A program made the translations under genes and the position numbers. Positions 1 through 60,084 of a stretch of 64,000 nt of DNA are shown piece after piece. The notes beneath the pieces are model-generated. The model did no database searches, was not told the DNA's origin, and worked only from the letters and a program-made list of their open reading frames with translations. Each line of letters starts with the position of its first letter. The first letter of the stretch is position 1. This DNA comes from Lepidodermella squamata. Its lineage: Eukaryota; Animalia; Gastrotricha. The DNA lies in assembly GCA_047495785.1 (NCBI GenBank), contig JBLDXI010000017.1:1736001-1800000 (forward strand), in the 5' to 3' direction.

Positions 1-729
1 GACCGTAAGATCGAAACTCCGCTGAGTAAGGTGGACGTAGACGTCATCTTTCGTCCAAACTGGTGGTTCAAAAGAATTAAGCTGGCCGCGGTAAACACAT
101 ACGATTTGACCATTTATCGGGTTCCGCGTTAGACTAGTCAAATGCTGACCGGGGGTGCAGCTGTCCCCAGGGCCAAATTCTACCTGGTACGTAGATTCAA
201 TCGTGCCAGTCGGGTTGAAAATCTACGAAAAAAACAAGTATTTCGGGGCTATAACGATGAAAAAATCGCTTACATGAATTCGATGTGTGTTCCAAACTGC
301 GAGTTGGTTGCGTTCTGGCATAGCTACGACGTGATTAGGCTTCTTCAGCATAGTTCCCATGCGATCGACGCCTTGAAACGTAGCCACGACCTGCATTTCA
401 TCGTAGTTAATTTTAGCATCGCCCGGCTCACATCGCCGCCTTTTCCGTGTCTTCTCGTCCGCCGTATTGCCATTCGTTGGACTTGCCAGCGTTATCTCAC
501 CGATTGGTAACTTCAGCAGATTGCTAACAGTTAGTTCAAAAGTGACGTTTTCTTTGAAACGGGCGGTAACTAAGGCCTCGAGCGGCGCCGAGTTGGCCAA
601 TTTTCGGAATTCGGTAATCATTCGAGTTTGTTCGATCTGAAGATGAGCTACCATTTTGTGAACGATAGCCGCCGTTTTCAGCTCCAGCCGGCGCTCCATC
701 ATTTGAACAAACGTTTCAGGGTCCATCAT
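1..729 (-). CDS. N20: coiled-coil + NHL-like propeller family member, 3' part runs off the window
   Basis: ATG at 729 (MMDPETF); helical domain with LLKLPIGEI; KTRKRRR linker then YDEMQVVATF; GTAAGC donor near 272; next exon reads IFNPTGTIESTY...RNPINGQIVCV to the edge. Confidence 0.75.
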
Positions 730-1374
730 TTTTGGGGTTGAAAATGCGGGCAATTAATTTAATTTGATTATTTATTCTACAATGAAAGCAGCAGTGATTT
801 GCGTCCGGAAGAAGTCAAGTCTAGCTACGCTATATTAAAATGAGCTATTTAAGCAACACGCAGCGGATATGGCCCATTTACGCACCTTGTATGGGCTAAG
901 AAACTTTGAAGCGGCTTGTTTTATTATTTATAGCTCACAACGCGCATACACTTCGCGCGTAAAACAAGGAAAAGACAACAATTTTCATAAAATATTTAAC
1001 TAAATGGTCGCTCGTAATGAGACACCGATCTTATTGCTAGCCAGGGCGCATTTTAAACAGTATTGATTGTACATATTTTCTCCAACGTTTTGTGTATATT
1101 CACGGACACTTCACGCCCGGTGTTTGTGTGTTTACCTTGCAATATCTGTCGTAGAAACAAGTAGCCATATATCCGGTTGTGTGTTAATTTTATGCAATGG
1201 TAAGATTGTTTCCGCTTCATTCTTGTTTACAGTGGCCGTCTTACTTCAGGCATAGGAATTTCATGCAAGTATACGCCAAAATCATTTGTGTGCTGGATTT
1301 CAATTAATCGAATACATCAATAACAAAAATTGACCCAACAAATTTCAAGATTTATTCATCAATTTAACGCAAAA

Positions 1375-1656
1375 TCAGTCCAGTTTATTGTTATCAGATG
1401 CTGCAGGCTCTTCAGATGATGCCGAAGGGTCCCGTTGAATACGCAGCTGGCCGAATGGTGTTTTCAGCAGCCGATCGAGAAGTGCATTGAAAACTGGATT
1501 TTCCCTGAAATGAATATTCGGGTCATTACTGGACGTAATTAGGCTGCTAGCTTCGGCAATTAGTTTTCCTCGCTTCGCCAACAACTCCTCGATTGCGTGT
1601 GTAATTTTCTCAGAAAGGTCAGCTTCGATTTTGCCAAACTCACTCGAGTCATCCAT
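1375..1656 (-). CDS. Mini-gene encoding only the family's N-terminal helical domain
   Basis: MDDSSEFGKIEADL...RGKLI...NPVFNALLDRLLKTPFGQL matches the family motif ER.RL...N..F...L..LL.TP.G; stops before any propeller; TTTAG acceptor upstream. Confidence 0.65.
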   Translation of the reverse strand: MDDSSEFGKIEADLSEKITHAIEELLAKRGKLIAEASSLITSSNDPNIHFRENPVFNALLDRLLKTPFGQLRIQRDPSASSEEPAASDNNKLD

Positions 1657-1705
1657 TTCAAATTTTATCAAATATTTCGCTAAATTATTCGGGTATAAAC
1701 ATTAT

Positions 1706-5366: not shown

Positions 5367-5941
5367 TGGCGATGAATTGCAGCGAACGGAAAAATCTCAT
5401 CGTTTTCTCACCATTTTAAGAAGGATTTTTCATTTTTCAATAGGAGCCTATCATCTGGAACAGGCTAAGTAAAATAAAAGACAAAAACAAACTTTGTAAC
5501 TAAGAGCATTTCAAATGACGTTTCGATTAAATGACGGATAAAGAGGAGGATTCTAAACATAAAGCATAAAAATCTTCATTTGTGTCCTGCCAAATAGATA
5601 CAAATTCCAACCAATTTCTTCTTCTTCACAAAATAATTAGCTAAATTTTCGAATTTCACACCTCTCGGAGGCTCCCACTGGAAATTCCTGTGTCCTTGAA
5701 AAATGCATGAAAAGTGTTAGGTTCATGTGATGGAGACACTAGCTTGATTCCACATGGACAAAATCTTGTTTGTCAATTTTTTTTTGTCGATTTTAAACAT
5801 GAAATCGCGAGACGTTAATATTTTGGGAACATGAAGCGGCAGAGAAATAGAGGACTAATGAGGGAGGAAATGGAGAAAAATAGAAAAAGGACAGCGTCTT
5901 CAACGGGTATCATGTATTTTTTCTTTTTTTCTCGTTTTAAA

Positions 5942-6031
5942 GAGCGCAGCTTTCGCTTTAGCGCCCTGAGACCAACATCAGGTGATGGTAAGGATACATA
6001 CCTTAGACACAAATCAAATTCGCAGATGGTT
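5942..6031 (-). ncRNA. Candidate spliced-leader (SL) RNA, copy A
   Basis: AACCATCTGCGAATTTGATTTGTGTCTAAG|GTATGT; hairpins TAAGG/CCTTA, CATC/GATG and GGGCGC..AGC-GAAA-GCT.GCGCTC; 90 nt conserved across 6 copies with divergent flanks. Confidence 0.7.
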
Positions 6032-6630
6032 AAATTTCACCTCGACCAAATTTTCAACCGCCCGCTAAAAGCTTATATCAATTAGCATATCGCATAGTTC
6101 TGAATTCTGTTGGAAATAAAATAGTAGCAATAAAATGGTGCAATGGTGGGGATAACGCATTCTAATATTCAAGACTGCTACTCGAATAAGAGTCAAACTC
6201 CCCCTCGATTCGTACCAATGCAAGAAGAAAGGCGAATTACCCTCAACATCCAAATGGCATTCATCGAGATGAATATTTCCAAAAATGATTCTGTAATTTC
6301 TCAATTACACAGTAGCTTTGGATTGAGAATAACTCAATACTTATTTTGAGAGTAACCAGTCGAGAGGTGTTGAGGAAATCTGTAGACAAAGGAGCGCTTT
6401 TTCTCAGAGTAACCCGGTTGAGGCATGACAAGTCCTCTAGCTGGAACCGGTCCCACTGTACTGTAATTACCGAACTTCAGTTCATTCATTTTGAATAAAG
6501 TAGTTCGGCAACAAAGCTCGAGAAACTGCAACAAAAAAAGAACAGATGACAGACAATCCGGCATGCAACGACCGAAGACGCGACGCAGATAAAATCTCAC
6601 TCTTATCTTATTATTGTTTTGGGTTTTAAA

Positions 6631-6720
6631 GAGCGCAGCTTTCGCTATAGCGCCCTGAGACCAGCATCGGTGATGGTAAGGATACATACCTTAGACACAA
6701 ATCAAATTTCGCAGATGGTT
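6631..6720 (-). ncRNA. Candidate SL RNA, copy B (variant, 31-nt leader)
   Basis: Same RNA with a 1-nt insertion in the leader, a 1-nt deletion in the stem-2 loop and 2 substitutions; upstream motif degenerate. Confidence 0.6.
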
Positions 6721-6910
6721 CATCTAAACTCCGAAAAAATTTAAACTCCAAGCAAAAGCATTCCTACAGCCACGTCAAGTTCCAGGTCATTGTTAAGCCT
6801 GTTCTTAGAATGTAAACTAGGATTATCGACCGATGTAACTAATAAATGCAGTCGACTTCCACATCATTTAAAAAATATCGATTTCACTAATTTCAATAAT
6901 AAATTATCTT

Positions 6911-7050
6911 CGAATGTTCTGTTCAACTTACTTCAATAGCGCCAGCTAACGAATCTGAACTGAGCATGAGACCATTTTCAGGGTCGAATTGAATGCCGCG
7001 AAGACCATGAAATCCACCAATAGCTAATTCAACCATAGCAACGTCGAGCG
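6911..7050 (-). pseudogene. Orphan fragment of N18 exon 2 (3' end plus donor)
   Basis: ELAIGGFHGLRGIQFDPENGLMLSSDSLAGAIE is identical to the end of ORF 14181..14813, without the rest of the exon. Confidence 0.85.
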
Positions 7051-7414
7051 ATGGAGACACTAGCTTGATTCCACCAAAATTTTTAATATCCAACGAGATT
7101 CCTAACCTCAAGTGTGGAAATAAAAGTAGAATTTATTGCGCGAGGAATTTTTAATTGATGCAATAAAAACTCAATTTGTAGGCACTTTTTCACTCGTGAA
7201 CTTTGATGCGAGATGACTACCAACCTCTTTTTGATATCGTTCGACTCCTCGTTAATTCCTCCGAATGTTTAAAAATTCTTTTATTGACAACGAAATTCAT
7301 TCAAGGAAGTATTTTTCCAAATTAATTTATGAAGAGAATAGATTTCGGTAAACTGCAACAGTGAGGTTACAATCACTCGAAAGATTTCGGTCTTCTTTCG
7401 GTAGTTACCACATT

Positions 7415-8732
7415 TCAAGACGAGTCTACATCGACGGGGCTCGCCAAAAATACGACTTGCCGATTTAAGAACTCTGGCAAAGCTATGACGCCGAAGCTAG
7501 TAACACCAGATGCTTCAAATGTGATGAGATCACCGCCTTTAGGAGCCATAGCCACCGCTATTCCATCGGGACGAAAGTTGTCCGGCCCTTGGTAAGCATT
7601 TTCCTTCCGACCATTCGAACTCAACACCTTATCAAAAATAATACGATATAATTAAATAAAATTATAAAACGCAACAAATAATAATAAATCTGAACCGTGA
7701 TTTGATTTTTCAGGGACTTTGTAGCGACCAAGAATTTGCCATCTTCATCTACTGTGCAGCCACTAATGTTACAAAACAATCTGTCGAAGGTTAACAGCTC
7801 ATCCGTGAAAAGTTGGCCATTAGACTGATTAATTGGAATTGTGCCAATTTGACTGCGAATATTACAGCCGAAATACAACCGGCCGTCGGGGTGAACTCCA
7901 TAGACCGTAGCAGAATTAGCCAATTTTGACGGTATCTTTGAAGATCGAACGCTATCCCAGTTCCATAGAGATGTGCCAACAATAGAAGCGTCTTCAATCG
8001 TGAATAATTGGTCGGTTTTAGCGCAACAAGCTATGCCTCGCTGGGCTACTCTGGACGGTAAAGTTCGAATGGTTGAAAATTTGACGGCGCCTTCGCCAGA
8101 TTTCACAGGTTGATCGAGTTGACCGATTTGGCCATTTATAGTGAATAACAAGCGGTTGTTGCACGGGTTAACGGCGACATTGATAGGGGTATCAGCTATA
8201 CGTCTAGGGACATTCAAGATGCCCGAGCAACTACTCCGAGACACTAATTTGCCGTTGTAGGAAAAAAGCTGGAAATCAGATAAATTCGTACCAGTAATAT
8301 TGGAATTCAGAAATTTACACTTATGTTGTAACCATGACTTATTGCAAATTTCCCATCAAATAGCGCCACTGCAGTTGGCTTGAATTTAAAACCGTCACTG
8401 CTCTTGAAAGTAGCCGCAATTTGAAGGTCCGAATAGTCGATTTTACCATCCCCTGGTCTTTTCCGCTTCCTCGTTTTGTCATCGGGTGCAGCCTCAAGGT
8501 TCGCCATTTCTGATGACTTTTTACCCGTCACAACATTTCCAATATCGGCATAGATGAGCCGGGATAGCAGATTGATGAAAATAGGATTGACATTGAATGT
8601 AACCTGAAACTTCGCTTTCGTCAACATGGCGTGAACTTCTTGGAGTCTGCTAATTTCGGATGTTCTCATTTTCATCAGAGACTCAATCACATCGGCAATT
8701 TTATCGTCCAAATCATTCGTAAATGATTCCAT
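7415..8732 (-). CDS. N19: coiled-coil + NHL-like protein (3 exons)
   Basis: ORFs 8307-8732, 7621-8244 and 7415-7627 joined by two phase-0 GT-AG introns; KTRKRKR linker; ISGCTVDEDGKFLVA and FRPDGIAV NHL-like blades. Confidence 0.85.
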
Positions 8733-9057
8733 CGTAAATTAATAGAGCTAAAAATCAATAAGATCCGCAATTAAATTCACTTCAGAAATTCAAAAACAAA
8801 TATGAATCAAGATTGCCGTAACGAGGATAAATTTCAACAAAAACCCTGTTTTTCGATTTACAAATCAATGAGAAGTTCTAAAATTCCGAAAACGTGAGCA
8901 AGGTGATTCCCCCGATTTTCTGGCTAATCTTAGGAAATTTTCTATTTTTACATGATTTTTGAAATTTAAAATACCTATGATATTAGAGAAGCGTCCGACT
9001 ATACCAGGTCAGAATTCACCCTGGATACGGTAATGCAATATTTGTTCGTTGATTTTA

Positions 9058-9216
9058 CGGGTGAGGCGCGAACGCCGGTACCCAAGTGAAATATTTTGCA
9101 CCCGACTCCGCCGATGAGGCAAAGCGCAGGGGTCAGCGCGCCGCAGTGCAATGGCACGCCTCGCCCTGGGGCGACCGACTTGTTGATCTCGGTACATCCC
9201 AGTGCCAGGTAAGTTT
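9058..9216 (-). ncRNA. U1: U1 snRNA, copy 1
   Basis: 5' AAACTTACCTGG; loop I GATCAACAAG; loop II ATTGCAC; GCAC/GTGC closing helix; terminal GCG-TTCG-CGC stem-loop. Confidence 0.95.
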
Positions 9217-9280
9217 AGTGGCAATAGGTTTCAGCTTAAATCCGCTTTCATCACTGATTCGCTTCTGAATATTCGACTTA

Positions 9281-9288
9281 ATTTGCAT
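9281..9288 (-). promoter_or_regulatory. Octamer ATGCAAAT at -72..-65 of U1, in the same position in all four cassettes
   Basis: atttgcat on the + strand inside the tRNA-U1 spacer of every copy; the octamer is a known snRNA enhancer element. Confidence 0.6.
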
Positions 9289-9334
9289 AAAATCAAGTAG
9301 GGAGAATGAAAATTGAATGAAAAAATGCGACGTT

Positions 9335-9406
9335 TAGCAGAGCGTAGTTTCGATCTACAGACCTCTGGGTTATGGGCCCAGCGCGCTTCCACTGCGCCAC
9401 TCTGCT
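9335..9406 (-). tRNA. tRNA-iMet: Initiator tRNA-Met (CAT), cassette 1
   Basis: AGCAGAGTGGCGCAGTGGAAGCGCGCTGGGCCCATAACCCAGAGGTCTGTAGATCGAAACTACGCTCTGCTA: A1-T72 pair, GGG/CCC anticodon stem, ATCGAAA T-loop, T6 terminator downstream. Confidence 0.98.
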
Positions 9407-9558
9407 TGTCTGAGTGCTAAGATCGTAATAGCTAATCAAACTTCAGATTCGTTCGTTTTTGCGAGAAATTCTCTAAATAAATCAGCGGCAATAAACGGCC
9501 GTGAAAAAAATTCAGCTGATTCAGATGTGATAACCACTACACCATAATAAATATAATC

Positions 9559-10659: not shown

Positions 10660-13600
10660 TCAGTAACATTGTTTGAGATTAGCGAAAAACGATAGGCGAT
10701 TACTCGCAGCCTCAATGACAGCAACAACGCGGCTGAAAACACCGAAATTCAGGTCGAATGGGTAGTCGTCGGGTATGTCGGCAATGGCCAGGGCCGACGG
10801 AGCAAAATTTTTCATTCCAAAATCGCACAGTCTTTTCTTCGCATCAAGAGAGAATACCTGGAAAATCAACACAAAATTATAATGATTATTCCAGTATTTC
10901 ACGGCTACGCATGCATTGACTATGAAAAAGGTTGTTTCAATTAGCAAAATCAACATTCCAACTTCGAATAATGACTGAAAAATTAACTGTCGTAAAGATA
11001 GATATAGCATAAAATGGCTCCCCACTTGTAAGACGGCACTATCTGAGGAAATCGGTGATCGAATAGCACATTACTACAAGCAACTAGCAAGCCCCTAAAT
11101 GAAAAAGGACGCTTTTCGTAACGGTCCTACGAAGTTTAATATTTTTTATTTTTTTTTTCGTTTTAAAGAGCGCAGCTTTCGCTTTAGCGCCCTGAGACCA
11201 GCATCAGGTGATGGTAAGGATACATACCTTAGACACAAATCAAATTCGCAGATGGTTAAATATTTTCTGGACTTCAAATCCGACCACCCTCTGAAAGACC
11301 AATACACTGAACTCTCCGTGCAGATCAAAGTGGATGGAAAAATGAGAGATCGTTCATTCAAAATTTAAAGACAAGACCACGTCGATAAACATTTGATTTG
11401 ATGAATGATCAAGGTGGCAAAGTCATAAGGTTAGAAATTTGCATCCAAATTTGTTTTTATCCAGTGAGAAAAATTTGCCTTGGAGGCGCGGCGTTATGCA
11501 CTTTGAGGTGCCCACTGGAATTAAGGAAAATGGTGAGCCTTTTGTCCGTGTTCCCTTGGCGATGGTAACACGAAAGGCGAGCGACCGAGGCAGAAAACGC
11601 ATGAAGACTGGAACACCCGAAATATGTGAAACACAGATAATACCCATTTGTGACATGAAACTGCTGTGTTAGAAGCGTGCGGCCTGATGCTATTACCCCG
11701 AGAGCCTTGAAAGGAAACAGAGACGAGAAACGAGCAACATATATTTATCGCAGATAGTATCAAACGAGACGGAAGGCGTAACAGCTACTGCTGAACAAAA
11801 TGGAAAATTTCCAAATTTTTTATTTTTGTTATTTTTTTTTCGTTTTAAAGAGCGCAGCTTTCGCTTTAGCGCCCTGAGACCAACATCAGGTGATGGTAAG
11901 GATACATACCTTAGACACAAATCAAATTCGCAGATGGTTAAATATTTTCTGGACTTCAAATCCGACCACCCTCTGAAAGACCAATACACTGAACTCTCCG
12001 TGCAGATCAAAGTGGATGGAAAAATGAGAGATCGTTCATTCAAAATTTAAAGACAAGACCACGTCGATAAACATTTGATTTGATGAATGATCAAGGTGGC
12101 AAAGTCATAAGGTTAGAAATTTGCATCCAAATTTGTTTTTATCCAGTGAGAAAAATTTGCCTTGGAGGCGCGGCGTTATGCACTTTGAGGTGCCCACTGG
12201 AATTAAGGAAAATGGTGAGCCTTTTGTCCGTGTTCCCTTGGCGATGGTAACACGAAAGGCGAGCGACCGAGGCAGAAAACGCATGAAGACTGGAACACCC
12301 GAAATATGTGAAACACAGATAATACCCATTTGTGACATGAAACTGCTGTGTTAGAAGCGTGCGGCCTGATGCTATTACCCCGAGAGCCTTGAAAGGAAAC
12401 AGAGACGAGAAACGAGCAACATATATTTATCGCAGATAGTATCAAACGAGACGGAAGGCGTAACAGCTACTGCTGAACAAAATGGAAAATTTCCAAATTT
12501 TTTATTTTTGTTATTTTTTTTTCGTTTTAAAGAGCGCAGCTTTCGCTTTAGCGCCCTGAGACCAACATCAGGTGATGGTAAGGATACATACCTTAGACAC
12601 AAATCAAATTCGCAGATGGTTAAAGTTCAATACGACAAAATTTTCAACCGCCCGCTGAAGGCTGATATCAATCAACGTAGCGCATAGTTCTCGACTTCGT
12701 TAGAAATGAATAAAATGGCAATACAATAACACCAAGATCGGTGAGACAAGTCGTTGCTACATGTATTTAACCTGCAAGCGTGTTTTGATGCATGGGGTAA
12801 AACATTGTCATAACCGGGACTTCTCCTTGCTTGAGCTTAGCACCACCTCAATCCATGTCGACGTAAGAAGAGAAATTAGCTAAAACTGATCATCCGAACG
12901 GTGGAATTTATTTATCAGAAAAGCCTCCAGAAAATGAAATTATTTTCAGACTTAGATTTCCCATCAACTCGAAATGACGATTTCGATTTCGTTGAAGACA
13001 ATAGAATTCGTAAACGTTTAAAAGAAAATTGAGCAGGAGACGTGCAACAAAACTTGCGCAATAATTTTTCGAAGTGATTGAGAAGTAACTTTGGTTATTT
13101 TGGAGAAATCGTGGAGTCTCATTATTTCATTTCATTCATTCCGCTGAGGGATGAGCATTGTTTCTGAGGAAAACACGTTATAATGGTCTTTCATTTCTGA
13201 TCTATGAGGAACCATTCTTCGTCCACAATTACCGATGAAGAGTGCCGAATCAAGTCGACTAATCAATTCAAATTAATTAGTTAAGTTAGAATGTTTCCAA
13301 CCACAAAAAGGTCTAGAAAACTCGACAGACTTCGCAATTTAGATAAAGATACGCTAATATAAAGAGGCTTGAAATGGCGATATGTTAATATTTCCGGGTT
13401 CAAAAAGTGGCAGGGTAATAGAGGACGAAGGTAGAACCCCTCAGGATGCTGGGAAACTTTTTAATAGGAAGGCATCGTCACAGGCTAATATTTTGTGTTT
13501 GTTTTTTCGTTTTGAAGAGCGCAGCTTTCGCTTTACCGCCCTGAGACCGGCATCAAGATAAATTAGCCAAAATCATAACCCAAATGGTGGCATTTATTTA

Positions 13601-16141
13601 CCTCAAAAACTGAAATTAGAGGCTTATGAATTTCCCATCAGCTCGAAATGACTCGAATACTGTCTAAAACTAGAACTTGGACGTTATACTAAACATGAAA
13701 TCGCGAGATGTTAATATTTTTGGGTACATGAAGCGGCAGAGAAAATGGAGGAAAAATTTGAAAAAGGACAGTACTTTCAACGGGTATCGTCTATTTTTTC
13801 TTTATTTTCGTTTTAAAGAGCGCAGCTTTCGCTTTAGCGCCCTGAGACCAACATCAGGTGATGGTAAGGATACATACCTTAGACACAAATCAAATTCGCA
13901 GATGGTTAAATGTCACCTCGACCAAATTTTCAACCACCCGCTGAAAGCTTATATCAGTCAACATATCATATAGCTCCGAAATTCGTTGGAAATAAAAGAA
14001 ATTTGCAATAAAATGGCGCAATGGTGGGTATAACGCATTCTAATAATCAGACTGCCACTCGAATAGGAGTCAAACTCCCCCTCGATTCTTACCAATGCAA
14101 GAAAATAAGCGAGTTACTCTTAACATCCGAATGGCATTCATCGAGATGTATATTTCCAAAATGGAGCCCGAATGTTCTGTTCAACTTACTTCAATAGCGC
14201 CAGCTAAAGAATCTGAACTGAGCATTAGACCATTTTCAGGGTCGAATTGAATGCCGCGAAGACCATGAAATCCGCCAATAGCTAATTCAGCCTTGGCGAC
14301 ATCGAGCGAGCCATTCGAAGATATCGGAACGGCGTACAAACTCGATGAATCATCGCTGTTCTCACGAAAGAACAATCTACCGCCATGGGCTCCAATCACC
14401 ATCGGCTCGTTCACTTTCGTAATGACCCACTTATCCTGCGGGGTCCAGTCAGCCAGTGAGTAGGATCGAATGCAGTTGCCAAACGCCGTGAAACAGCGAT
14501 TGACGTTTGCGCATATGGCAAGGCCATGGGCGAACAAACCAGTCGGGTCATCGATAACAGTTCTCACCCTGAAATTTTGAAAGTCCGAGTTTTGTTCGCC
14601 GAGATTGATTGAAATGACGATTCCGCGGGAAACAGCGACCATTTCATTGTTGACTGGGTTCAAAGCGATCAAGCGTGGGCAGGTTTGGTGGCGAGTTGTG
14701 CGCACTTTCGGCCCTTTTTCCGGGACATCGATGATTTTCACCAATTGACCAGTTACGGTATAAATCTGTGATGAAACATAAAATATAAATAGATAAATGA
14801 CCGCCTTAATCATATCAAGGCCAGAGGATTTGTATAAGAAATTTATAAGTTCAATAGTCGTCTATTTGAATCAGACAAGCAGAGTGGCGCAGTGGAAGCG
14901 CGCTGGGCCCATAACCCAGAGGTCTGTAGATCGAAACTACGCTCTGCTAAACGTCGCATTTTTTCATCGCGCTTACGAAAAATTGATATTTATCGCATGA
15001 ACCTGATTTTGATAATTTATCGATTTTTGAAAATCCAGTTCAGTTCCGATTTCGAAATGCTCATTTGAAGCTATGAATGTGATTCTTCAGCTGGGCATCA
15101 ATTTATTCACAGAAAATTGAAAAATTAATACCACCTTAAATATTATGGGAAAAACTTCCTACACAACTTCAAAGGTCCAGTGATGTATTTTCCAGTTTCT
15201 GGACACACTGATATCAAAATTTATCCGAGAACAAAATCGACTACGAGAGACTAAAATCAATAGCGTTTCCGATTTTCAATTTTTTATGTTGAAACTGGGG
15301 TTGATAAACTCGTTTGAGTTATAAGAAAAGATGCAATTTTTTCTCGATTTTACGGGTGAGGCGCGAACGCCGGTACCCAAGTGAAATATTGTGCACCCGA
15401 CTCCGCCGATGAGGCAAAGCGCAGGGGTCAGCGCGCCGCAGTGCAATGGCACGCCTCGCCCTGGGGCGACCGACTTGTTGATCTCGGTACATCCCAGTGC
15501 CAGGTAAGTTTAGTGGCAATAGCTTTTAGCTCATTGCCGCTTTCATCACTGAAACGCTTCTGAATATTCGACTCAATTTGCATAAAATCATGGAGAGAAA
15601 ATGGAACATAGAGTTTAAAAAATGCGACGTTTAGCAGAGCGTAGTTTCGATCTACAGACCTCTGGGTTATGGGCCCAGCGCGCTTCCACTGCGCCACTCT
15701 GCTTGTCTGAGACCATATCACGATAAAGATTTTATGTCCTATTTCTCCAGGTCGAAAATTGTTCAAAAATTTAGGAAAAATCATCTTACTACGTTAATAT
15801 CAAGGTTCGAATCGTGGAAGTTAAGCGTGAAAAATTACCGCGATATAACCGATGAAATGAACAACAAAGCCGTCCTTAGTTGGCAGAGCCGCGACACTGC
15901 ACGGTTTCGACTCTTTCTGGAAGTCTTCCAACGTCAACGAAGCAAGCAGCTTCATTCTTCTGTAAGGATTCTCCAGCCAGATGCGGTACCAATCAGGCCC
16001 CAGTTCAACCTGAGGCGAGCTGGTTTTCTCAGATGGAACGGCTGAATCAAAATTATCCAACAAAGCGCCGAAAGTCTTGACGTTTTTCTCAACTTTTCCA
16101 GGCTTTGCCAGCTCGGTACTTATTTCGATGGTTTGATCCAT
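10660..16141 (-). CDS. N18: NHL-like protein with divergent N-terminus; both introns contain ncRNA genes
   Basis: Exon 1 15839-16141, exon 2 14190-14765 (FHGLRGIQFDPENGLMLSSD), exon 3 10660-10857 (VFSLDAK...FAPSALAI...RLSFFA); phase-0 GT-AG introns at the family positions. Confidence 0.7.
11168..11257 (-). ncRNA. Candidate SL RNA, copy C
   Basis: As copy A with one substitution (GCTGG vs GTTGG). Confidence 0.7.
11850..11939 (-). ncRNA. Candidate SL RNA, copy D
   Basis: Identical to copy A. Confidence 0.7.
12532..12621 (-). ncRNA. Candidate SL RNA, copy E
   Basis: Identical to copy A. Confidence 0.7.
13517..13555 (-). pseudogene. 5'-truncated copy of the candidate SL RNA (3' hairpin only)
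   Basis: gagcgcagctttcgctttaccgccctgagaccggcatca, then similarity ends; leader and donor missing. Confidence 0.7.
13818..13907 (-). ncRNA. Candidate SL RNA, copy F
   Basis: Identical to copy A. Confidence 0.7.
14878..14949 (+). tRNA. tRNA-iMet: Initiator tRNA-Met (CAT), solo inverted copy
   Basis: Identical 72-nt sequence followed by a T6 run; no U1 downstream on this strand. Confidence 0.98.
15353..15511 (-). ncRNA. U1: U1 snRNA, copy 2
   Basis: As copy 1 with one substitution just before the Sm-site position. Confidence 0.95.
15632..15703 (-). tRNA. tRNA-iMet: Initiator tRNA-Met (CAT), cassette 2
   Basis: Identical 72-nt sequence. Confidence 0.98.
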
Positions 16142-16365: not shown

Positions 16366-18431
16366 TTACGCAGCACCATAAATATGGATACCACAGACTC
16401 TGTCGATGACAGCCAGGATGTTGTAGTAGCGCGATTCTCCAACGCAGTACGGTTTGTCTTCAAAACAACTCAAAATAGCACAGTCGTATGGCCTGAATTT
16501 GATTGCGCTTTTCGGAGGAGGTTTCAGCGTAGCTAGTTTCTCGATGCCATCAGGACTGAATATCTGAAAATTGAGGAAAACGATAATACAGCGTGTCCCA
16601 TAATTAACACAAGCAAAGAAAAAACACGAAGAAGGGCTCTGAAACTCTAAATTGAGAGACAAAGTCACATCTCATGGGCAGACAATTTTTAGAAGAATTC
16701 AAAAAATCACGAGGGTAGTAATCAAGGAGGTAATCATTCGTTATTAGGACAAAAAAGTGCGGAAAAAATTTGGTCCCAAAGGGTAAATAAACCGAAAATT
16801 ACCGAAAGTTACCATCGGGAGTTTCCGGGTTTTCTCCGGTAACTTTTCCATTTTTTTCGGTTAAATCGCGGATATATACTCAAAGACTCTCTCGGTAGGT
16901 TTAACTTTGAGAAATTAGTTGAATTTCCAACAAAAATTTGCCGAATAAAAAATAGTTGCGCAACTTCCGGGACACGCGTAGAACGAGACAAATTAATACA
17001 AAAACTCAAAAATCATACCATAGTGAGGCAATGATAATTAAAAAATCCGGAATAATTCTTAAAATGACGATATACCAAAAGTTTAAGATATTTTATGACC
17101 TGGTTTTTCAAGTTCTCGAATAATTTTCAGAAAATTCTGAAATCCCTGAAAAAGCTTGTTGGGCCATCTAAGCGAATGTTTTTCATCAGTGAAAAATGCT
17201 CGCGAAATCTTACCGTAACAGTGTCGGCACCTGCATCGGCAGCTATGATGTTACCATCGGCATCGAAATCGATCCCCCTCAAATCGCAAAACTTGCGAGA
17301 AATCACCGGTTCTTCCTCATCGAGAATCAGCATACCCAGACGTCCAATCGGTGCAGACATCAAAGAGCTGCTATTCAACGCAGTGTGATAGAACAGCCGA
17401 TCTTCAAAGCAACCGGCGACAAATGGTTTATCGATGCTAGTGACTTGCCACTCGCCGCGTTCTTCCCAACTGTCCAACGAGAAAGATTTGATTTTGTCGC
17501 CGAAAACTGTGAAAAGACGATTTTCAGCCTTGCTCAGCGATATGCCGTGCGGCGAACGGTGGGCCGGGCTTGAGTCGCTAGTCAACAGGCGCAGATTCAC
17601 ACACGTGTCGCGCGGTGAGAAGGGCGAAACAGAGAGAATTTTGCCATCATCAGCTGCGTAAATCAAACTTCGGGTGCGGTCAAACTCGATCAAACTCGGG
17701 CTATACTCGCCAACGATGCCCAAGCCAGAAATGCCAGGAATCCTTAGCGATTGCCTTATTGAACCCATCGGCTTGACCAACTATAAAATTTAAGAAATTA
17801 AAAAATTTTAACCAAAGTTGGTTAAGGTGGCTCATGATTTTCCTGATAATTTTTCGAATTTTTTATTATTATTTTCGAATTTATAATTTAATAAATTAAT
17901 TTTAACTTTTAAAATAAGTGAAAATTGATTTTAGAAATTTACGGATAGTTTGTTGAAGCCATGGCGCGTTAAAAAACAGCCCCAATCAGGCGCGGCTACA
18001 ATGCTTCTCGGTTTAATCACATCGATCGAAGCCAAATACTCGATATCCTGATAGGTCCTCGCTTCTCGCTTCCGTTTTTTCGCCATAGAACATTCAGAAT
18101 CCGCAATCGCTAAATCAGGTTTGATGGCAATTCGAGACGGTACAGCTTCAATTGCAGCGAAACTAGCTGGCGGGGTGATGAGAGGTTGAATCTTACATTC
18201 TGCCTCCGAAGGGACAGTTGAAACCTCGAATTTTCCAACTTTTGTCGACGTCACAGCAGCGAATGATTGAGTGAATTCGGGAGTTCGGAGATACGAGACC
18301 TGGAAACTATCATCAGAGGCTAGTTTAGTGCCCAAAGTGACAAGACGATCGCGTTCTGACTTTAGAAAATTGACCATCTCTTCGACTATCAGTGCGAAAT
18401 CTTCATCAACCATTGCTCCGACTGAACCCAT
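16366..18431 (-). CDS. N17: coiled-coil + NHL-like protein (3 exons)
   Basis: ORFs 17931-18431, 17127-17780 and 16366-16668; KKRKR linker; LRGIDFDADGNIIAADAG NHL blade; ~650-nt intron 2. Confidence 0.85.
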
Positions 18432-18839
18432 AATCGATAGCGAAAATATTGAAAAAATTAACAGCAGAAGGTATCCTAAAAAATATATGTTCCATTATGC
18501 ACAATGCTAATGATCTTGTCGCTTTTACGAATTATGCTGTTACCTAAGAGATTTCGATACCGCAGTCAAAATCAGTAAACGGAATTTGAATCAACACTGT
18601 GAAAATGGGGCTCATAAGTAAAGGAGCTGCTCACAAGAAGGGGGTCGATATCAAAAAATTTAAAACTTAGGTAGGTTATTATCCATCCAAATTTAGCAAA
18701 AATCCACTTGGCAAAGGTCCATTTTTCTGTTGATTTTACCTGCTTTTAGAACGTTTAAAATACCTATGAATTCAGAGAAGCGTCCGAGTATACCAGGTCC
18801 GAATTCACCCTGGTTACAATATTTTTTGTGTTAATTTTA

Positions 18840-18998
18840 CGGGTGAGGCGCGAACGCCGGTACCCAAGTGAAATATTTTGCACCCGACTCCGCCGATGAG
18901 GCAAAGCGCAGGGGTCAGCGAGCCGAAGTGCAATGGCACGCCTCGCCCTGGGGCGACCGACTTGCTGATCTCGGTACATTCCAGTGCCAGGTAAGTTT
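18840..18998 (-). ncRNA. U1: U1 snRNA, copy 3 (variant)
   Basis: U1 hallmarks retained; four substitutions relative to copy 1 in stem/loop I and stem/loop II. Confidence 0.9.
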
Positions 18999-19116
18999 AG
19001 TGGCAATAGATTTCAGCCAATTACCGCTTTCATCGCCAAAACCCTTCTGAGTATTCGACTCAATTTGCATAAAATCAAGTAGGGAGAATGAAAATTGAAT
19101 GAAAAAATGTGACGAT

Positions 19117-19188
19117 TAGCAGAGCGTAGTTTCGATCTACAGACCTCTGGGTTATGGGCCCAGCGCGCTTCCACTGCGCCACTCTGCT
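19117..19188 (-). tRNA. tRNA-iMet: Initiator tRNA-Met (CAT), cassette 3
   Basis: Identical 72-nt sequence. Confidence 0.98.
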
Positions 19189-19508
19189 TGTCTGAGTTAT
19201 AAGATCTAAGATTGCAGTGTATTTGTCGTCGGAATTGGCTCAATGATAAGTCAATTCACCCGAACAGCATTTCGAACTTCGGATCGGATCGGTAAGTCTA
19301 AAATGCAACTCTGAGAAGCTGAAAGAAATATTTACCGACGAAGAAATCGAAATTTTTTGTCAAATTCTAAAAAAAATGCACAGATTTCAATTTTTTCTGC
19401 CATATGGAAGGACATCAAATTAATATATGTAATAACATATAAAAATAGTCAGATAAAAAATATCTGAAACCTCTGAAAGTTCAAGTGAAAGAGACAGCAA
19501 CGTATAAC

Positions 19509-22500
19509 TTAGCGACCGCCGAACAAATGAACACCAGAATCTTTGCTAACAACGGCCACGATATTACGATAGGTGGAGTCGCCCACCTTGTAGGGTGACC
19601 CGTTATAACAATGAAGCACCGCGCAGTTTTTCGGCACAAACGAATTGACCGGTACTCTAGGAGGGCATTCCAACGTAGCAAGTCTTGTTCTCCCATCAGC
19701 ACTGAATATCTAAAATATTTTGGAAAACTGCAAGAAATATTATTTCAATCAGAATTACCTTGACGTTATTCGATCCGCTGTCAGCAGCAATCAAGTGTCC
19801 AAATTTGTCAACGACCGATCCATCTAGGTAGACGAATTCGCCACGCATTTCAATTTTCATTTGTTTGAAGTCCAAATTTCCGTTATACAAAATCGGCACC
19901 GAGACTAGCGAGTCGGCAAATTTTGAGCGAATAAGAAGTTTTTTCCTGAAACAGCCAACCACATACGGCTTATTCAAAGAAGGAACAGTCCATTCGCCGC
20001 ATTGCTTCCAGTTGAGCAATGAGTAGGATTTAATTATACCTCCAAAGGCTGCGAATAACACCTTCCGTTCGCGACAGACGCCAAATCCGCATGGCGAAAG
20101 ACCGCTCTTATCTTCGATCACCTTAAATACTCGTGCAATATCGTCATTCGGACCGAATTTTCCGAATTTGAAGATTTTTTGATCATCGGCTAGGTAGAAT
20201 TGTTTTGATATGTAGTCATAGACGAGTGAACTCGAGGCGTATTCGCCGAGGGCTGCCTTGCCAGAAACACCCGGGAGACTGAGCGTTCGGCCTAATTTCC
20301 CCGATGAGGAAATCATCTAAAATAAATTGAAGTATCATTAAGGCATGATTTCAGTATTTAATTTCGAAAAATTCGGAAAAATTTAGCCATATTTTTAAAT
20401 TTAACTCCACGGGGGTACAATTTTATCAGATTTTTCACCTGTCGTCTGATTCAATCGCATTGGATGAATGCCAGGCTGCCGTTCAAACTCCCGAAGAATA
20501 GGCTGACTAGGCAAAGCGGGCGAAAATCCATGCAGTTACATCTTATGGAAGTGGGAACTGTTGTTGTTCACCGCTCGCAGAAATTCCTTTCCAAGGATGA
20601 CACTCACTATTTACTACTCTTCACTACTCTTCACTACTCTTCCCTCACCTATTTCAGTTTGGCAGCGGCGGATTGCCCGAAAGCGGGCATACTCTTACTC
20701 GAAGCGGGAGCAAGTCATTCACTGGCTCAAAGTGTCAAGCAATCGAAGCTGCTTGAGGCAATGGTTGATGAATTCCCTCGAAGATCGCCATCTACTGCCA
20801 GACAATCAGTATGCTTTTCGTTCTCACCTCTCTGCTACCGACGTTCACCGCGTGTTCCACAATCGTTCTCATCGCCGATCTTGACGTGGAAGTCGCCTAT
20901 GACTCCATCTGGCCTGCTGGTCACAAGCTAGCCCAGCTGCCTCTACCGCGGAACCTCCTTGGTTTGACTATCACTATGCCAGCTTTGATCAATCGATCAA
21001 CATGGATACAACTGACTACATTAGTATTAGATCTATATTGTATATATTAGATAACACGTTTCGAACTACTGAGCTCCCTCCATGACATGGAAATCACGGC
21101 TTTGAATAGGCAAAGGAGCAGCTCCGTTATCGAGCTCCACAAACCCGCGCCCCAGGAAAAAGAGAAGAACCCAGGTGATCGCAAGGGTGATCAAAGTTTT
21201 CTTATGAACATCGTATAATGGTTCAAAAATTTCGCACCTTAAGAAAAATCGACCCGTCCCGCCTCCTTGAGAAAATGTTGAGGTTTTAGAAAAGCTCTGA
21301 ATGCTGCTATGCGCGCAACTCCTGATTCTGATGTGAAGCGTTCAACAACTCCTCTTCAACCTGCTGTAGAGGATGGTAGATTTGTCAGAGCTACTTTGCC
21401 CTACTTTAAAACGAATTTGCCTCAACTGAAAAATCCTAATCCGAAGCGTTAACGAAGTTACGGGCAAGAAAAGCTACTACCATTTGATTGCAAATTATTT
21501 TGAAGCGCTCCCAAAAAATTTGCAAAACGGAGAGTTTTATCGTGTTGCTTTGGCAAAATTCGGAATTAGAAAAATTTGCCAAAACCAACCTGGAAACGGT
21601 CCATTATTGTGTTGATTTTACGGGTGAGGCGCGAACGCCGGTACCCAAGTGAAATATTTTGCACCCGACTCCGCCGATGAGGCAAAGCGCAGGGGTCAGC
21701 GCGCCGCAGTGCAATGGCACGCCTCGCCCTGGGGCGACCGACTTGTTGATCTCGGTACATCCCAGTGCCAGGTAAGTTTAGTGGCAATAGCTTTCAGCTC
21801 AAATCCGCTTTCAACAGTGAAACGATTCTGAATATTCGACTTAATTTGCATAAAATCATGTAGGCAGAATGAAAATTGAATGAAAAAATGCGACGTTTAG
21901 CAGAGCGTAGTTTCGATCTACAGACCTCTGGGTTATGGGCCCAGCGCGCTTCCACTGCGCCACTCTGCTTGTCGCACCCAAAGAATTTGCGACGAGTTTT
22001 ATCATGGTGCTTTGGCAAAAGTTAACAAATTCGGGGTCATTTTTTCAAATCAGGTAGTGGGAATCCATTGCTATTAAATCCGCCAAATAGTTTCTTCAAT
22101 TTTGAAATAATCGAAAATAAAATTTAATTCACCGATATTTGATTTTTCGAGTGGCGTACAACGAAGCAATTCCAGCCTGCCACTGCAACGATACTTCTTG
22201 CCTGAGGAACATTCAGCGAGCCCAGAAAATCAATTCGCTGAAATGAATCATCACCGCTATATCTCGTCGGGGCATGTTTCACCGCCGGACCACGTTTCAA
22301 AATGTTCGAGGTTAATTTTTTGAGACGACTAGGCGATTGAATTCTCACAGGATCAGGAATTCGCGTCTCATCTTGTGTCGGACTTCGAGCTGTTACTTCG
22401 AATTTGCCAACCGCTGATGCCTTGAAAGCGGCGAACGCTTGCATAAATTCGGGCGTGCGAACGTAGGACACTTGCAAACTGCCACCGGAATTGAGTTTGG

Positions 22501-56971: not shown

Positions 56972-57380
56972 ATGCAAGCAAGCTTGATCGCAACAGTTTT
57001 GGCCTCGTTGGCAGTTGTAATATCGATCATCGAAGCGGCGCCAGCCAGCCGCCGTTCTGCTTCAAGCAACAGTGCCGAACTAACCTTCACGAACTGTAAC
57101 GACTGGGTGGCAAGGTTTAAACACGAAGCAAATAAGGCCCTTCCCAGTAAGTCCTATACATTAAATTCTCGTTTCTTAACTAAAATTTATCTCGATTTTT
57201 CTAGAAAAAGCGTCAGTAGGCGAAAGGCGCCGTCAGAGCAAAATCGATGATTACTGGTTTTACTGCATGTTGAACAACTTCGACTCAATCGTGCCCCAAT
57301 ACGACGGCAATGCTGATATGAATTCTATCGATATGATCGACTTACCTGATGGGAAGAATCCGTTTGACATTTTCAATTGA
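56972..57380 (+). CDS. Secreted protein, 116 aa (2 exons: 56972-57146, 57205-57380)
   Basis: Signal MQASLIATVLASLAVVISIIEA; phase-1 GTAAGT..CTAG intron; CNDW...RRR...DYWFYC. Confidence 0.75.
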
Positions 57381-58472
57381 TCACTGTTTGCGTGAATAAT
57401 CACCGTCTCGTTATATTTTGTTCCGAATCCTCTTTTTCTCCCCCATTTTTCTCCTGTTTTGCCATCGTGAGAATTTAGCGATCGAATAAATTTTTTTATA
57501 ACGTTTTGTAATTTTATATGCAACATTTATTTTTGTATAAAAATTATGATTCGATTTTTATTGTTTCTGGCGTCTCAAGGCTGGGACCTAATGTCTAAAA
57601 GAGTATACGTTTTTTTGACAAGAAATCTCGCTCGATCAGTCTCTTCTTGCTTTGTAAATAATATTCCAATAAAGTTACGAATCCGAACAGTTTTAAACAT
57701 GACGTTTTTCCAAGTTTACTACTTGGGACAGGTCCCAAGGCTGGAACCATCAGCTTAAGGTTATCCCTATAACGCTTGGGAATTATTTTCTAATTTTCGT
57801 TCTAAAAGATGGTGAGCTTTTTGAGCTTTAACCTTGAATTATTTCATTTTTCGAAATTAGAACAACAATAGGTACTTCGAATCGGCAATTTTATCCCGCG
57901 AGCAAGAACATTTTGTGGTCGAAATGTCCGATAAAAATCGTAAGTAAGACAGCGAGTAGGAAAAGGTGACAACAAATAACATCAGCTGAGGCAGAAACCG
58001 TGTCGTCCGATTCGATTGACAGATGTCACCGCCCCGAGGTCCGACTCGGTGTCTCAAACAAGGATGTTAATTAATTTTACACAGGATAACGAGTGCTAAT
58101 TAGTCTAATTAAATGTTGCTCTTTCTTTTTGGGCAATTTCGAGGCCTGTCACTCATTTCTGCCACGGCTAGATTTATCCCTGATTTCATGCAAATTTTGC
58201 CGAATTTTCAATGAGCAATTTTTGGCCATGTCTTAATTCCACTAATTAAATCTATAAGGGAGAAAGATTTTCCTGTTTGTACGGGCTTGTACGGGTAAAT
58301 TTTGTGTAGGTATACGCCATAGTTCGTATCTAGGCGAAAATAAACCCTTCAGTGCATCAAGGTGACAAAGTAATTTTCAACACGTCTTATAAAATTAGGA
58401 AAAAGTGTTTCCTAAAAATAGCCATCACGTGAAATACATTTTATTTCCCAGTATAATTGAAAACAAATTGAT

Positions 58473-60084
58473 TTATTTAAATTTTGGCGCGAAGAGTAAA
58501 ACCGAGTTTCGGCCGACATCAGCGACAACAACGACAGGTCGGCGGTGTTTTGTCATATCGAGTTGCATCGAAGAGATGACAGCAACGCCTCGCGGTTCAA
58601 AGGCGCCGCAGCTTGAAAATTGCTCGCTCAGAGACGGCGCGAAAGTACATATCGCCCGACCGCTCGAAGAAAACACCTGAATTCGCCGATTTCCCTGCTC
58701 GACGACAAGCAGATTGCCCTCAAGATCGCACGCAGCCGCGGTTACCTGCGAGATATTACCCGGAGCTGGGCCGTCCTCGGCCAGTAAATACTTCTCATGC
58801 GTCTCGATTCGCCCACTGCGGCCGAAAATAGGCGATCGGTATAGTTCAGCCCCATTCCACGTCGTGTAGACTAAAAAGGTCTTAGCATCAGAGCCGTGAA
58901 CTGTCCAATCAACAGCTGGATGCTGGACGGAGTGAAGCGTTGTAGCGAATTGGTGGCTTGGGGGAAGTTTACAACGCAGCCGTTCTGAGGCATCATCAAG
59001 TGAAATAGCCCGAATTTCCATTCCAGTAGCGGCGTAGATTAGCCGGCAAGGTGTGAGCGAAATCGCGATGCCACTAATTTTTCCGCCGGAAATTTTCATG
59101 TCCCCAAATTGCGCGAACTTTGTTGGAACAACAAGGGTTTGATCGGCTTTGATTGTTGTAGTGTTGAAAGCAAAAATTGTATCCTGTTTTCCTGAAAAGT
59201 ATTCAAAACAAAAGTTTTAAAATTAAAATTAAAATTTAATTTAATTTAATTTAATTTAAAATTTCAATTTGAAATTTTTGAAATTTAATTGATTTAAATT
59301 AATTTTTAAATTTTATTAAATTTAATTGTTTACCTTCTTCCATGAGAAATAACCGGCCAATATCGTCAGCAGCCAGTTGAATAATTTTTCGGAAAAATAA
59401 AGGTAGATGTTCGTCGTGGCACAACATATAAGTCGCAATCAGTTGACCAGCTGAAGAAACGATACTGACCCGGTTATTGTTATGGGAAAAAGCCGCGCAA
59501 CTGTTGGCACCAGCCGGAATGAGGCAGGCAACACAAGTCGGGTTCTCAATAACGCAACCTAGCGCGTCCTGGCCATGAATAACAGCTAATACTCGCATCG
59601 ATTCGTAAATGCTATACGGCAGCTCTGATCGGCGATGTTCGACCGAAATCGGCCGTTCCACCACGGTTCTAACTTTTGAGGCGAGAAATAGCGGCTCGCC
59701 CTCGATATCTGTGCTGCAGGAGCTTGAAAACACCTCGAGTTTTCTCATCGCATTCATAAACTTCGGGCTCAGAGAAAAGGCCAGAGGTCGTCGCATTGGA
59801 GCTTGCCCTGATTTTAAACGCCGCTTTTCCTCGCCTATTACGACTCGGGCTTCGTTGATTACACGGTCACGCTCGGCTTGTAACCTAGATAAAACGACTA
59901 GCCGGGCGTCTTCCACAGCTGACTCGACCGATCGCTCGATTTCCATGAATTCATCACTGAGTCGGTTAAGCTCTTCAACGACTCGCTCATCTTCCTCCTC
60001 GTTTTTTGGGACAATGTTTTTGTTGTAACGAACAGTTGACTGACGAGGAGCATAGGCCGAAGTATGCCGTGCTAGTTGGCTCAT
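58473..60084 (-). CDS. N1: coiled-coil + NHL protein, most canonical-looking member (2 exons)
   Basis: Intron 59192-59333 (phase 1, in frame); NPTCVA, ACDLEGNLLVVEQGNRRIQVFSSSG and FEPRGVAV NHL consensus; long coiled coil. Confidence 0.9.

Follow-up and report, generated by a model that had tools for sequence, protein, structure and literature searches.

Small-RNA genes are found in several kinds of genomic company: SL RNA genes are linked with 5S rRNA genes in nematodes, Oikopleura and Euglena, and others, such as the snoRNA genes, are hosted in introns. The SL-resolved operons of nematodes and tunicates consist of tightly spaced genes on the same strand with a poly(A) signal near the acceptor, and 11 cistrons would be long for an animal operon. 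Among the TRIM-NHL proteins (Thin/TRIM32, TRIM2, TRIM3, TRIM71/LIN-41 and Brat), the coiled coils are much longer than 31 residues, and the NHL domain of TRIM71 binds RNA. SL-resolved operons have been reviewed (PMC7986045), and two further papers deal with the linkage of U3 with U5 in Euglena (PMC2784804) and with U1-U2 clusters in fish (PMC4696792).

The minus strand of the 64,000-nt window of Lepidodermella squamata DNA, by which we mean the whole stretch analyzed, was found to carry 20 paralogs of one NHL-like family, two mini-genes and two genes for single-pass membrane proteins, and these counts, derived from a family HMM and gene models, were the same as those of the earlier note on this DNA. 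The HMM placed family members on the minus strand only. Small-RNA genes are present as well: six for SL RNA, with one SL fragment, four for U1 and five for tRNA-iMet, of which one is inverted. We consider it probable that the locus is an old array of tandem genes from a lineage-specific family, on which housekeeping genes for small RNAs, clustered locally, are superimposed. The 20 family members, designated Z and A to S, were modelled by the HMM together with splice sites, and are arranged with their neighbors as follows.

60657..62622, minus strand: rhodopsin-type GPCR gene directly upstream of the array, outside the family
58473..60084, minus strand: paralog Z, two exons with a phase-1 intron (59333-59192), last blade in frame (HMM, gene model)
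53894-52615, minus strand: paralog A, exons 2 and 3 fused (gene model)
51909-50490, minus strand: paralog B, exon 3 with an apparent frame break (gene model)
49738-48459, minus strand: paralog C (gene model)
48007-46878, minus strand: paralog D, for which gene modelling found no exon 3 (gene model)
19509..40071, minus strand: paralogs E to O, a run of 11, with ATGs at 40071, 38584, 36226, 32359, 31053, 29450, 28065, 26508, 25121, 23762 and 22618 (gene models)
16366..18431, minus strand: paralog P, exon 3 at 16563-16369 (gene model)
10660..16141, minus strand: paralog Q, exons 16141-15839, 14765-14190 and 10857-10663
7415..8732, minus strand: paralog R (gene model)
5366-4470 and 3080-2004, minus strand: two paralogous, single-exon genes for type I membrane proteins; in each, a signal peptide precedes a Pro-rich ectodomain, a single transmembrane segment and a cytosolic tail that is conserved
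1951-1706 and 1656-1375, minus strand: mini-ORFs coding for the N-terminal helical module of the family alone
1..729, minus strand: paralog S, of which exon 1 and the first part of exon 2 lie in the window, the rest being cut off by its start

The genes had previously been taken to consist of two exons; the models gave three instead, with the last blade encoded by a separate exon in DNA that had been regarded as intergenic, and the intron preceding this exon was confirmed by an RNA contig in one gene. Paralog Z is at once the most divergent and the most canonical member, and its Pfam NHL match lies below the threshold. Paralog Q has a short N-terminal exon that lacks the helical module, and all four of its splice sites conform to the canonical GT..AG rule.

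The encoded proteins are laid out as a short pair of N-terminal helices, a disordered linker containing a cluster of basic residues, and a divergent propeller encoded by the tail of exon 1, by exon 2 (four blades) and by exon 3 (the last blade). Against Pfam NHL (PF01436), the paralogs of the window scored 12.2-16.7 bits, at the same blade every time, versus a gathering score of 20 bits, while a relative, P0069, reached 27.1 bits. A profile search with exon 2 returned 14,796 protein matches, and five of the seven matches scanned were NHL multi-repeat proteins with Pfam NHL E-values of 1e-45 to 1e-123. In a sequence search of the PDB, the best nine matches were the NHL domains of Thin/TRIM32, TRIM3, TRIM71 and TRIM2 (E-values of 2e-13 to 2e-8), and the nearest Atlas clusters to the family were likewise NHL. 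On these sequence comparisons, the family is evidently homologous, at the profile level, to genuine NHL proteins. For exon 2, AF2 gave a model (pLDDT 87.8) of four 4-stranded blades, which superposed best on the six-bladed propellers of the YWTD and NHL types, about 166 of the 195 residues aligning at an rmsd of 2.5-2.6 A; with the blade-like strands in the tail of exon 1 and the one further blade motif in exon 3, the propeller is predicted to be a six-blade NHL-type propeller.

The overall plan of a helical region followed by a predicted C-terminal six-blade NHL-type propeller is shared with the TRIM-NHL proteins, which are also the nearest solved structures by profile. The array proteins differ from them, however, in several respects. 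Neither a RING nor a B-box Pfam match was obtained in any of the 18 N-terminal exons, nor were conserved Cys or His columns seen there, and the propeller has diverged below the Pfam NHL threshold. The description of the genes as NHL-like and RING-less was accordingly borne out by the profile and PDB matches and by these N-terminal exons. That of the N-terminus as a coiled coil held for its helical nature but not for its extent, since the AF2 model of the N-terminal module had one helix of 31 residues (4-34) and another of 12 residues (45-56) followed by disorder, with no long coiled coil ahead of the C-terminal domain. The family, an NHL family without RING that forms a 20-gene array, is undescribed and lineage-specific. 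Those members that host the small-RNA cassettes are only 14-34% identical in protein sequence, with saturated synonymous sites, and the youngest pair of the family, F/G (dN/dS = 0.23), is under purifying selection.

The spacing of the genes was reported earlier as operon-like, and this impression was strengthened in the run from E to O, where the distances from stop codon to the next ATG were 83, 229, 97, 43, 119, 66, 131, 91, 27 and 111 nt; those among A, B, C and D were 451-751 nt. In several of the E-O gaps, ATTAAA is followed by TTTTAG right ahead of the ATG, and TTT[TC]AG occurs within 35 nt upstream of the ATG in 7 of the 20 genes, as compared with 5% of background windows (P ~4e-5). From these features of the DNA, the E-O run is a candidate 11-gene polycistron that would consist of one or more SL-resolved units. 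It resembles the operons of nematodes and tunicates in its same-strand genes tens to about 100 nt apart, with a poly(A) signal and, close behind it, an unpaired acceptor ahead of the following ATG, and it differs from them in that its cistrons are paralogs of one family and that the polycistron is predicted from DNA. The RNA evidence consisted of assembled contigs from one probable RNA run. These contigs joined L intron 1 and J introns 1 and 2, three introns only, exactly as modelled. The array genes are expressed and spliced, although the expression of the array appeared low in run X1. No SL leader was seen among the loose ends listed for the RNA contigs.

The same packing could instead reflect a compact genome in which every paralog is driven by a short promoter of its own; the AG motifs would then be acceptors at which 5'UTR introns are removed or the SL is added to monocistronic mRNAs. 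The contigs of relatives are likewise densely packed, no RNA piece among the rows listed spanned an intergenic gap, and of the 18 gaps that separate neighboring genes from Z to R, 9 are longer than 200 nt, all of which fit this alternative; on the other hand, a promoter would hardly fit into gaps of 27, 43 and 66 nt, and the order ATTAAA, TTTTAG, ATG resembles that of operons with coupled polyadenylation and trans-splicing. We regard a non-polycistronic array as a plausible alternative, albeit a somewhat doubtful one.

The small-RNA genes are confined to the 3' third of the array and are distributed as follows.

21898-21969 and 21620-21779, minus strand: tRNA-Met(CAT) (Rfam and ARAGORN) and U1 (Rfam), cassette 1, in O intron 1 (20317..22132, 1816 nt)
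19117-19188 and 18839-18998, minus strand: tRNA-Met(CAT) (Rfam and ARAGORN) and U1 (Rfam), cassette 2 (18734..19206), in the 1077-nt O-P gap
15632-15703 and 15352-15511, minus strand: tRNA-Met(CAT) (Rfam and ARAGORN) and U1 (Rfam), in Q intron 1
14878-14949, plus strand: solo, inverted tRNA-Met(CAT) (Rfam and ARAGORN), in Q intron 1
9335-9406 and 9057-9216, minus strand: tRNA-Met(CAT) (Rfam and ARAGORN) and U1 (Rfam), cassette 4 (8946..9424), in the 1927-nt Q-R gap
13814-13907, 12528-12621, 11846-11939 and 11164-11257, minus strand: four SL RNA genes, each about 94 nt long, in Q intron 2 (14189-10858)
13503-13554, minus strand: SL fragment, the 3' half alone, in Q intron 2
5794..7051, minus strand: segmental copy (about 1.2 kb) of the tail of Q exon 2 and the downstream SL gene
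6911-7051, minus strand: pseudo-exon in the segmental copy, 94% identical to 14169-14309
6627-6720, minus strand: variant SL gene with a 1-nt insertion in the leader, in the segmental copy
5938-6031, minus strand: SL gene, in the segmental copy

That the U1 and tRNA-iMet genes are real, as had been proposed, was confirmed by their scores and hallmarks. The U1 copies scored 100.7-106.3 bits against RF00003 of Rfam (gathering score 69.5), covered model positions 1-166 and carry the 5' ACUUACCUG expected of a U1 snRNA. The 72-nt tRNA has a CAU anticodon together with the hallmarks of eukaryotic initiator tRNA-Met, namely A1:U72, three G:C pairs in the anticodon stem (G29-31:C39-41), A54 and A60. 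The five tRNAs do not differ from one another, and neither do three of the U1 copies; the fourth U1, at 18839-18998, has four substitutions. The tRNA and U1 genes form a discrete unit of about 390-480 bp whose copies are 91-96% identical including the non-coding spacer, with the homology extending no more than about 10 nt beyond the 5' end of the tRNA and 20-110 nt past the 3' end of U1.

The SL-like RNA has no match in Rfam. Its leader with the GTATG donor occurs in five exact copies, versus none expected by chance, in addition to the one variant and the one 3' fragment, and those in Q intron 2 lie partly in a 682-bp tandem repeat. In the predicted fold, the donor is located within stem-loop 1 and two additional hairpins follow; the canonical Sm site (A U4-6 G) was absent between the hairpins, where a conserved UUGGUCU lies instead between hairpins 2 and 3. 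Judged by this predicted structure, the RNA has the make-up of an SL RNA gene, that is, a leader exon, a GT donor in a stem, further stem-loops, a length of about 100 nt and multiple copies, so that the earlier proposal of SL-like genes was upheld by the exact copies and the three-hairpin fold. We found no leader sequence for this animal in the literature. The same SL exon adjoins 5S in the rDNA spacers of two metagenome contigs, possibly from a relative, in a variant that retains the stem-loop 2 hairpin with a different sequence.

Under the array-plus-cluster reading, the family would have reached 20 members by old tandem duplication, and the four tRNA-iMet-to-U1 cassettes and six SL genes would have been copied by way of short segmental duplications into roomy non-coding DNA of the 3' third, where introns and gaps are long. 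A promoter-like motif of its own apparently lies upstream of each small-RNA gene, and every tRNA has a T-run terminator; the small RNAs would serve the whole cell, and their presence here would reflect local duplication in tolerant DNA, with no service to their hosts. The cassettes, 91-96% identical at non-equivalent sites in hosts only 14-34% identical, must have spread or been homogenized independently of the hosts, and their high identity could also reflect gene conversion or selection instead of youth. The duplication hotspot, which had been offered earlier as a mere fallback, was thus the best-fitting account of the discrete, near-identical cassettes and of the segmental copy carrying an SL gene. 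Against it stands a striking concentration, in that six SL, four U1 and five tRNA-iMet genes lie no more than 16 kb from members of a single gene family. The reported co-direction with the array, a second point against it, held for every small-RNA gene except the tRNA at 14878-14949; as it stems from a small number of local duplications, it carries little evidential weight. The locus shares with linked small-RNA clusters the linkage of different multi-copy genes amplified by local duplication, but here the partners are SL RNA, U1 and initiator tRNA, and they lie in the introns and gaps of a protein-coding array instead of a dedicated tandem repeat.

Alternatively, the small-RNA genes may have settled in the introns and gaps of active same-strand genes, whose open chromatin aids their expression, with the array as one such host. 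The earlier statement that these genes are partly intronic was verified by the gene models (O intron 1 and Q introns 1 and 2), the array is transcribed, and, as with intron-hosted genes such as those of snoRNAs, the host strand is used. Unlike in those systems, the genes here have apparent promoter motifs and terminators of their own and are found in intergenic DNA as well. Since two of the four cassettes are intergenic and the expression of the array in run X1 appeared low, we consider such a preference for active hosts unlikely.

It is more improbable still that the copies are dead duplicates of functional genes elsewhere. The SL gene with the leader insertion, the half-gene and the U1 with four substitutions would suit pseudogenes, but the identity of the remaining U1 copies and of all the tRNAs would not, nor would the spacer upstream of U1, which is largely conserved in the four cassettes with its ATGCAAAT octamer, the TTTCAG-G motif kept about 35-45 nt upstream of U1 and SL genes alike, and the T6 terminator retained 3' of the tRNA.

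Least tenable was the proposal of an integrated unit, a high-output operon with its own SL RNA, U1 and initiator tRNA for resolving, splicing and translating its mRNAs, or NHL proteins acting on these RNAs. The intronic nesting, the nearly uniform strand and the presence of the RNA-binding TRIM71 NHL domain among the closest solved relatives of the propeller speak for it, but SL RNA, U1 and tRNA are freely diffusible, trans-acting molecules, and the discrete cassettes are much younger or more homogenized than their hosts and occupy non-equivalent positions. Moreover, the same leader lies in rDNA spacers, the small-RNA genes keep to the 3' third, and the family members of relatives are singletons around which Rfam detects no small-RNA gene. 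We deem this proposal very improbable. We would likewise give very little credence to a bolder version, in which E-O, perhaps extending to Q, forms one very long SL-resolved polycistron of paralogs whose intronic leader-donor and U1 genes are co-activated, for example in the germline, within one chromatin domain, and whose NHL paralogs bind these RNAs.

If the array-plus-cluster reading is true, the locus exemplifies two common processes: a tandem family evolves by birth and death, and small-RNA genes are amplified locally. In practical terms, the analysis provides 20 gene models of a RING-less NHL family and a candidate 11-gene operon, and the sequence-tagged copies, with four U1 substitutions at 18.8 kb and a 1-nt SL insertion at 6.6 kb, could reveal which copies are active. 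An 11-cistron operon of paralogs, if true, would be of greater significance, as would the nesting of the SL and U1 genes, if it is conserved.

Using a family HMM built on 13 clear members, we detected family pieces on the minus strand of the window only, and splice-site modelling gave phase-0 introns of ~50-60 nt, whose donors resembled GTAAGT and whose acceptors resembled TTTTAG. A third exon of ~65-70 residues, encoding one additional blade, was located inside the apparent intergenic spaces, and the last blade was fused in frame in paralogs A and Z. The final tally came to 20 genes (Z and A to S), among which Q was composed of three exons separated by a 1.07-kb and a 3.3-kb intron. The array was accompanied by two ORFs encoding the N-terminal module alone and by two membrane proteins, paralogs of each other, that each have a signal peptide and a single transmembrane segment; a GPCR gene was found directly upstream of the array. 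In the assembled contigs of X1, a probable RNA run, intron 1 of paralog L (26042-26094) and intron 2 of paralog J (28342-28391) were spliced out, and the spliced form of J intron 1 was seen via a loose end, while the three splice joints were absent from the DNA run X2. The array genes are therefore transcribed and spliced as modelled.

Several members departed from the common plan. The third exon of B (50493-50771) apparently required either a shift of reading frame or one more small intron, that of D was not detected, and N and Q were devoid of the N-terminal helical module; these gaps represent modular loss within the family. Intron 1, usually 50-60 nt, was enlarged to 2484 nt in G (33293-35776) and to 863 nt in F (37296-38158), probably by insertions, and that of G contained an ORF on the plus strand (34219-34656), whose low-complexity product was rich in Pro/Ser and had no Pfam match. 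Two stretches inside the array, 40100-46850 (6.8 kb) and 54000-58450 (4.6 kb), were free of the family, and within them a 336-residue plus-strand ORF (42656-43663) belonged to no Pfam family. At 25451 and 26599, the X2 contigs departed into dissimilar sequence. A single weak joint (shorter side 21 nt) skipped 25480-26578, corresponding to exons 1-2 of paralog L, and dense half-depth SNP clusters (~10% locally) were present elsewhere. L may be missing from the second haplotype or present there as a very different allele, and the copy number of the array may thus be variable.

As for the identity of the family, Pfam gave sub-threshold NHL and SGL matches only, always at the same blade. An exhaustive search with an exon-2 profile matched 14,796 proteins, and five of the seven matches scanned were multi-repeat NHL proteins; two exon-sized metagenome relatives matched the profile over their own whole length. 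The best nine sequence matches in the PDB were all animal TRIM-NHL domains (Thin/TRIM32, TRIM3, TRIM71 and TRIM2; E 2e-13 to 2e-8), and NHL clusters were also reached by a language-model search. A word-indexed protein search returned no match with the read-through of gene I, partly owing to a length-window effect, or with the exon-2 alignment. The exons were modelled separately, and the mixed-exon alignments A1 and A4 were left out of folding because rows with different exons fell out of register, the blades being repeats of one another. The AlphaFold model of exon 2, a confident one (pLDDT 87.8), comprised four 4-stranded blades, and its best superpositions were with six-bladed propellers of the YWTD and NHL types (rmsd ~2.5 Å); with this model, Foldseek could not tell NHL apart from WD40 or YWTD, and VIA-align favoured six-bladed propellers in general only. 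In the model of exon 1, helices of 31 and 12 residues are followed by a disordered linker, which often bears a basic cluster, and then by blade-like strands; the N-terminal module had no usable Atlas match, and neither a RING nor a B-box was found in any of 18 N-terminal exons. On this evidence, the designation of the family as RING-less NHL proved right. The term coiled-coil, which the earlier note had attached to it, was generous for a helical pair that measures only 31 and 12 residues.

The identity of exon 2 among the paralogs was only 14-34%, with saturated synonymous sites, except for the F/G pair (77% identity, dN/dS 0.23). Judged from these comparisons, the array is old and its members are maintained.

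Paralogs E to O form a tight run, in which the gaps from stop codon to next ATG, with exon 3 included, were 83, 229, 97, 43, 119, 66, 131, 91, 27 and 111 nt. In several of these gaps, ATTAAA or AATAAA lay within ~10-30 nt ahead of TTTTAG, and the ATG came next; TTT[TC]AG was present within 35 nt upstream of 7 of the 20 ATGs, as compared with 5% of same-strand windows. Such packing and motifs would fit polycistrons resolved by a spliced leader (SL). However, the genome seems compact in general. Among the X1 and X2 read-contig matches listed there was neither the leader nor a gap-spanning piece. On balance, we regard polycistronic transcription of the array as somewhat favoured.

At the Rfam gathering thresholds, the window contained four full-length U1 genes, all on the minus strand, and Rfam further detected five tRNAs, each called tRNA-Met(CAT) by ARAGORN, four on the minus strand and one on the plus strand. 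Direct reading revealed A1:U72, three G:C pairs in the anticodon stem, A54 and A60, the marks of the eukaryotic initiator tRNA. An 87-nt tRNA-Val(AAC) called by ARAGORN at 45812-45898 (minus strand) was doubtful and was left out, since it was absent from the Rfam results even with E values of up to 1. A permissive Rfam search of the window matched no known SL family and added nothing else relevant. A repeat finder together with pattern searches yielded two repeated units, namely a tRNA-to-U1 cassette of fixed arrangement in four copies and a ~94-nt unit in five exact copies (0 expected by chance), one variant copy and one copy with the 3' half only. The latter unit starts with a 30-nt leader ending in GTGTCTAAG, followed by GTATGT and two more hairpins; its splice donor falls within the first stem, its upstream motif is conserved, and a canonical Sm site is absent. 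Its predicted architecture is that of a spliced-leader RNA. These small-RNA genes were confined to 5.9-22 kb of the window, as follows.

Small-RNA genes and their positions in the array
Cassette 1: intron 1 of paralog O
Cassette 2: the 1077-nt gap between O and P
Cassette 3, along with a solo tRNA-Met(CAT) in inverted orientation (14878-14949, plus strand; by Rfam and ARAGORN): intron 1 of Q
Four SL genes and a half-gene: intron 2 of Q
Cassette 4: the 1927-nt gap between Q and R
Two further SL genes: downstream of R

The genes look active, as suggested by several features. The spacer upstream of U1 was largely kept in all four cassettes (9217-9334 and the three other tRNA-U1 spacers) and contained the octamer-like ATGCAAAT; a TTTCAG-G motif was located ~35-45 nt upstream of the U1 genes and likewise of the SL genes, as a candidate for a proximal promoter element of snRNA type common to both; a T6 terminator followed each tRNA; and three of the U1 genes and all five tRNAs were identical copies. 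The inventory and layout described in the earlier note, with 20 paralogs, two mini-ORFs, two membrane proteins and interleaved, partly intronic U1, tRNA and SL genes, were confirmed, except that one tRNA lies on the opposite strand.

The earlier note had further proposed that the locus carries the RNAs needed to process and translate its own mRNAs. The positions of the small-RNA genes relative to their host genes were non-equivalent. Homology among the cassettes started ~10 nt upstream of the tRNA and ended 20-110 nt downstream of U1, with unrelated flanks beyond, and the copies were 91-96% identical, tRNA-U1 spacer included, in anciently diverged hosts. Moreover, a ~1.2-kb duplication had carried a copy of the tail of Q exon 2, and of the SL gene that follows it, to 5.8-7.05 kb, where a pseudo-exon remains, and a 682-bp tandem repeat held two further SL genes. 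Retroposition of the cassette as a SINE was ruled out because the T6 terminator separates the tRNA from U1. Taken together, the cassette limits and identity, the duplication and the tandem repeat bear the signature of short segmental duplications, or of homogenisation, that took place recently in tolerant non-coding DNA. The inverted solo initiator tRNA (14871-14967, plus strand) was 100% identical to a cassette copy over 97 nt, from ~8 nt upstream of the tRNA through the end of the T-run, a span close to that expected of a primary Pol III transcript; either retrocopying or a small inverted duplication could account for this tRNA.

Outside the window, the leader and donor were matched exactly in two metagenome contigs, in both cases in an rDNA spacer beside 5S rRNA.

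Leader-bearing rDNA contigs, from an exact search of metagenome contigs
L003:1-3668
L004:1-1678

These rDNA units were very compact (~1.2 kb from the LSU end to the SSU start), and their LSU-SSU spacer held 5S and an SL RNA gene with the leader of the window, the second hairpin of which differed in sequence yet folded; L003 also bore a tandem series of several partial leader repeats. Written as DNA or as RNA, the leader had no match in the literature searched, and its last seven bases were absent from the SLIDR/SLOPPR methods paper on SL discovery. Linkage of SL with 5S occurs in nematodes and Oikopleura. Different small-RNA multigene families are commonly linked in other organisms, as exemplified by the titles of PMC2784804 and PMC4696792. 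Relatives of the protein family were found on two contigs only (27 kb and 6.9 kb), each as a single gene among unrelated genes, and neither contig contained a small-RNA gene detectable by Rfam. With the leader residing beside 5S in rDNA spacers and the family relatives single and without small-RNA neighbours, a functional self-supplying locus was unsupported, and the absence of the linkage in the two relatives' contigs partly speaks against it. The best account is that a new RING-less NHL family forms an old array, probably operon-like, the long introns and gaps of which collected a local cluster of ordinary small-RNA genes.
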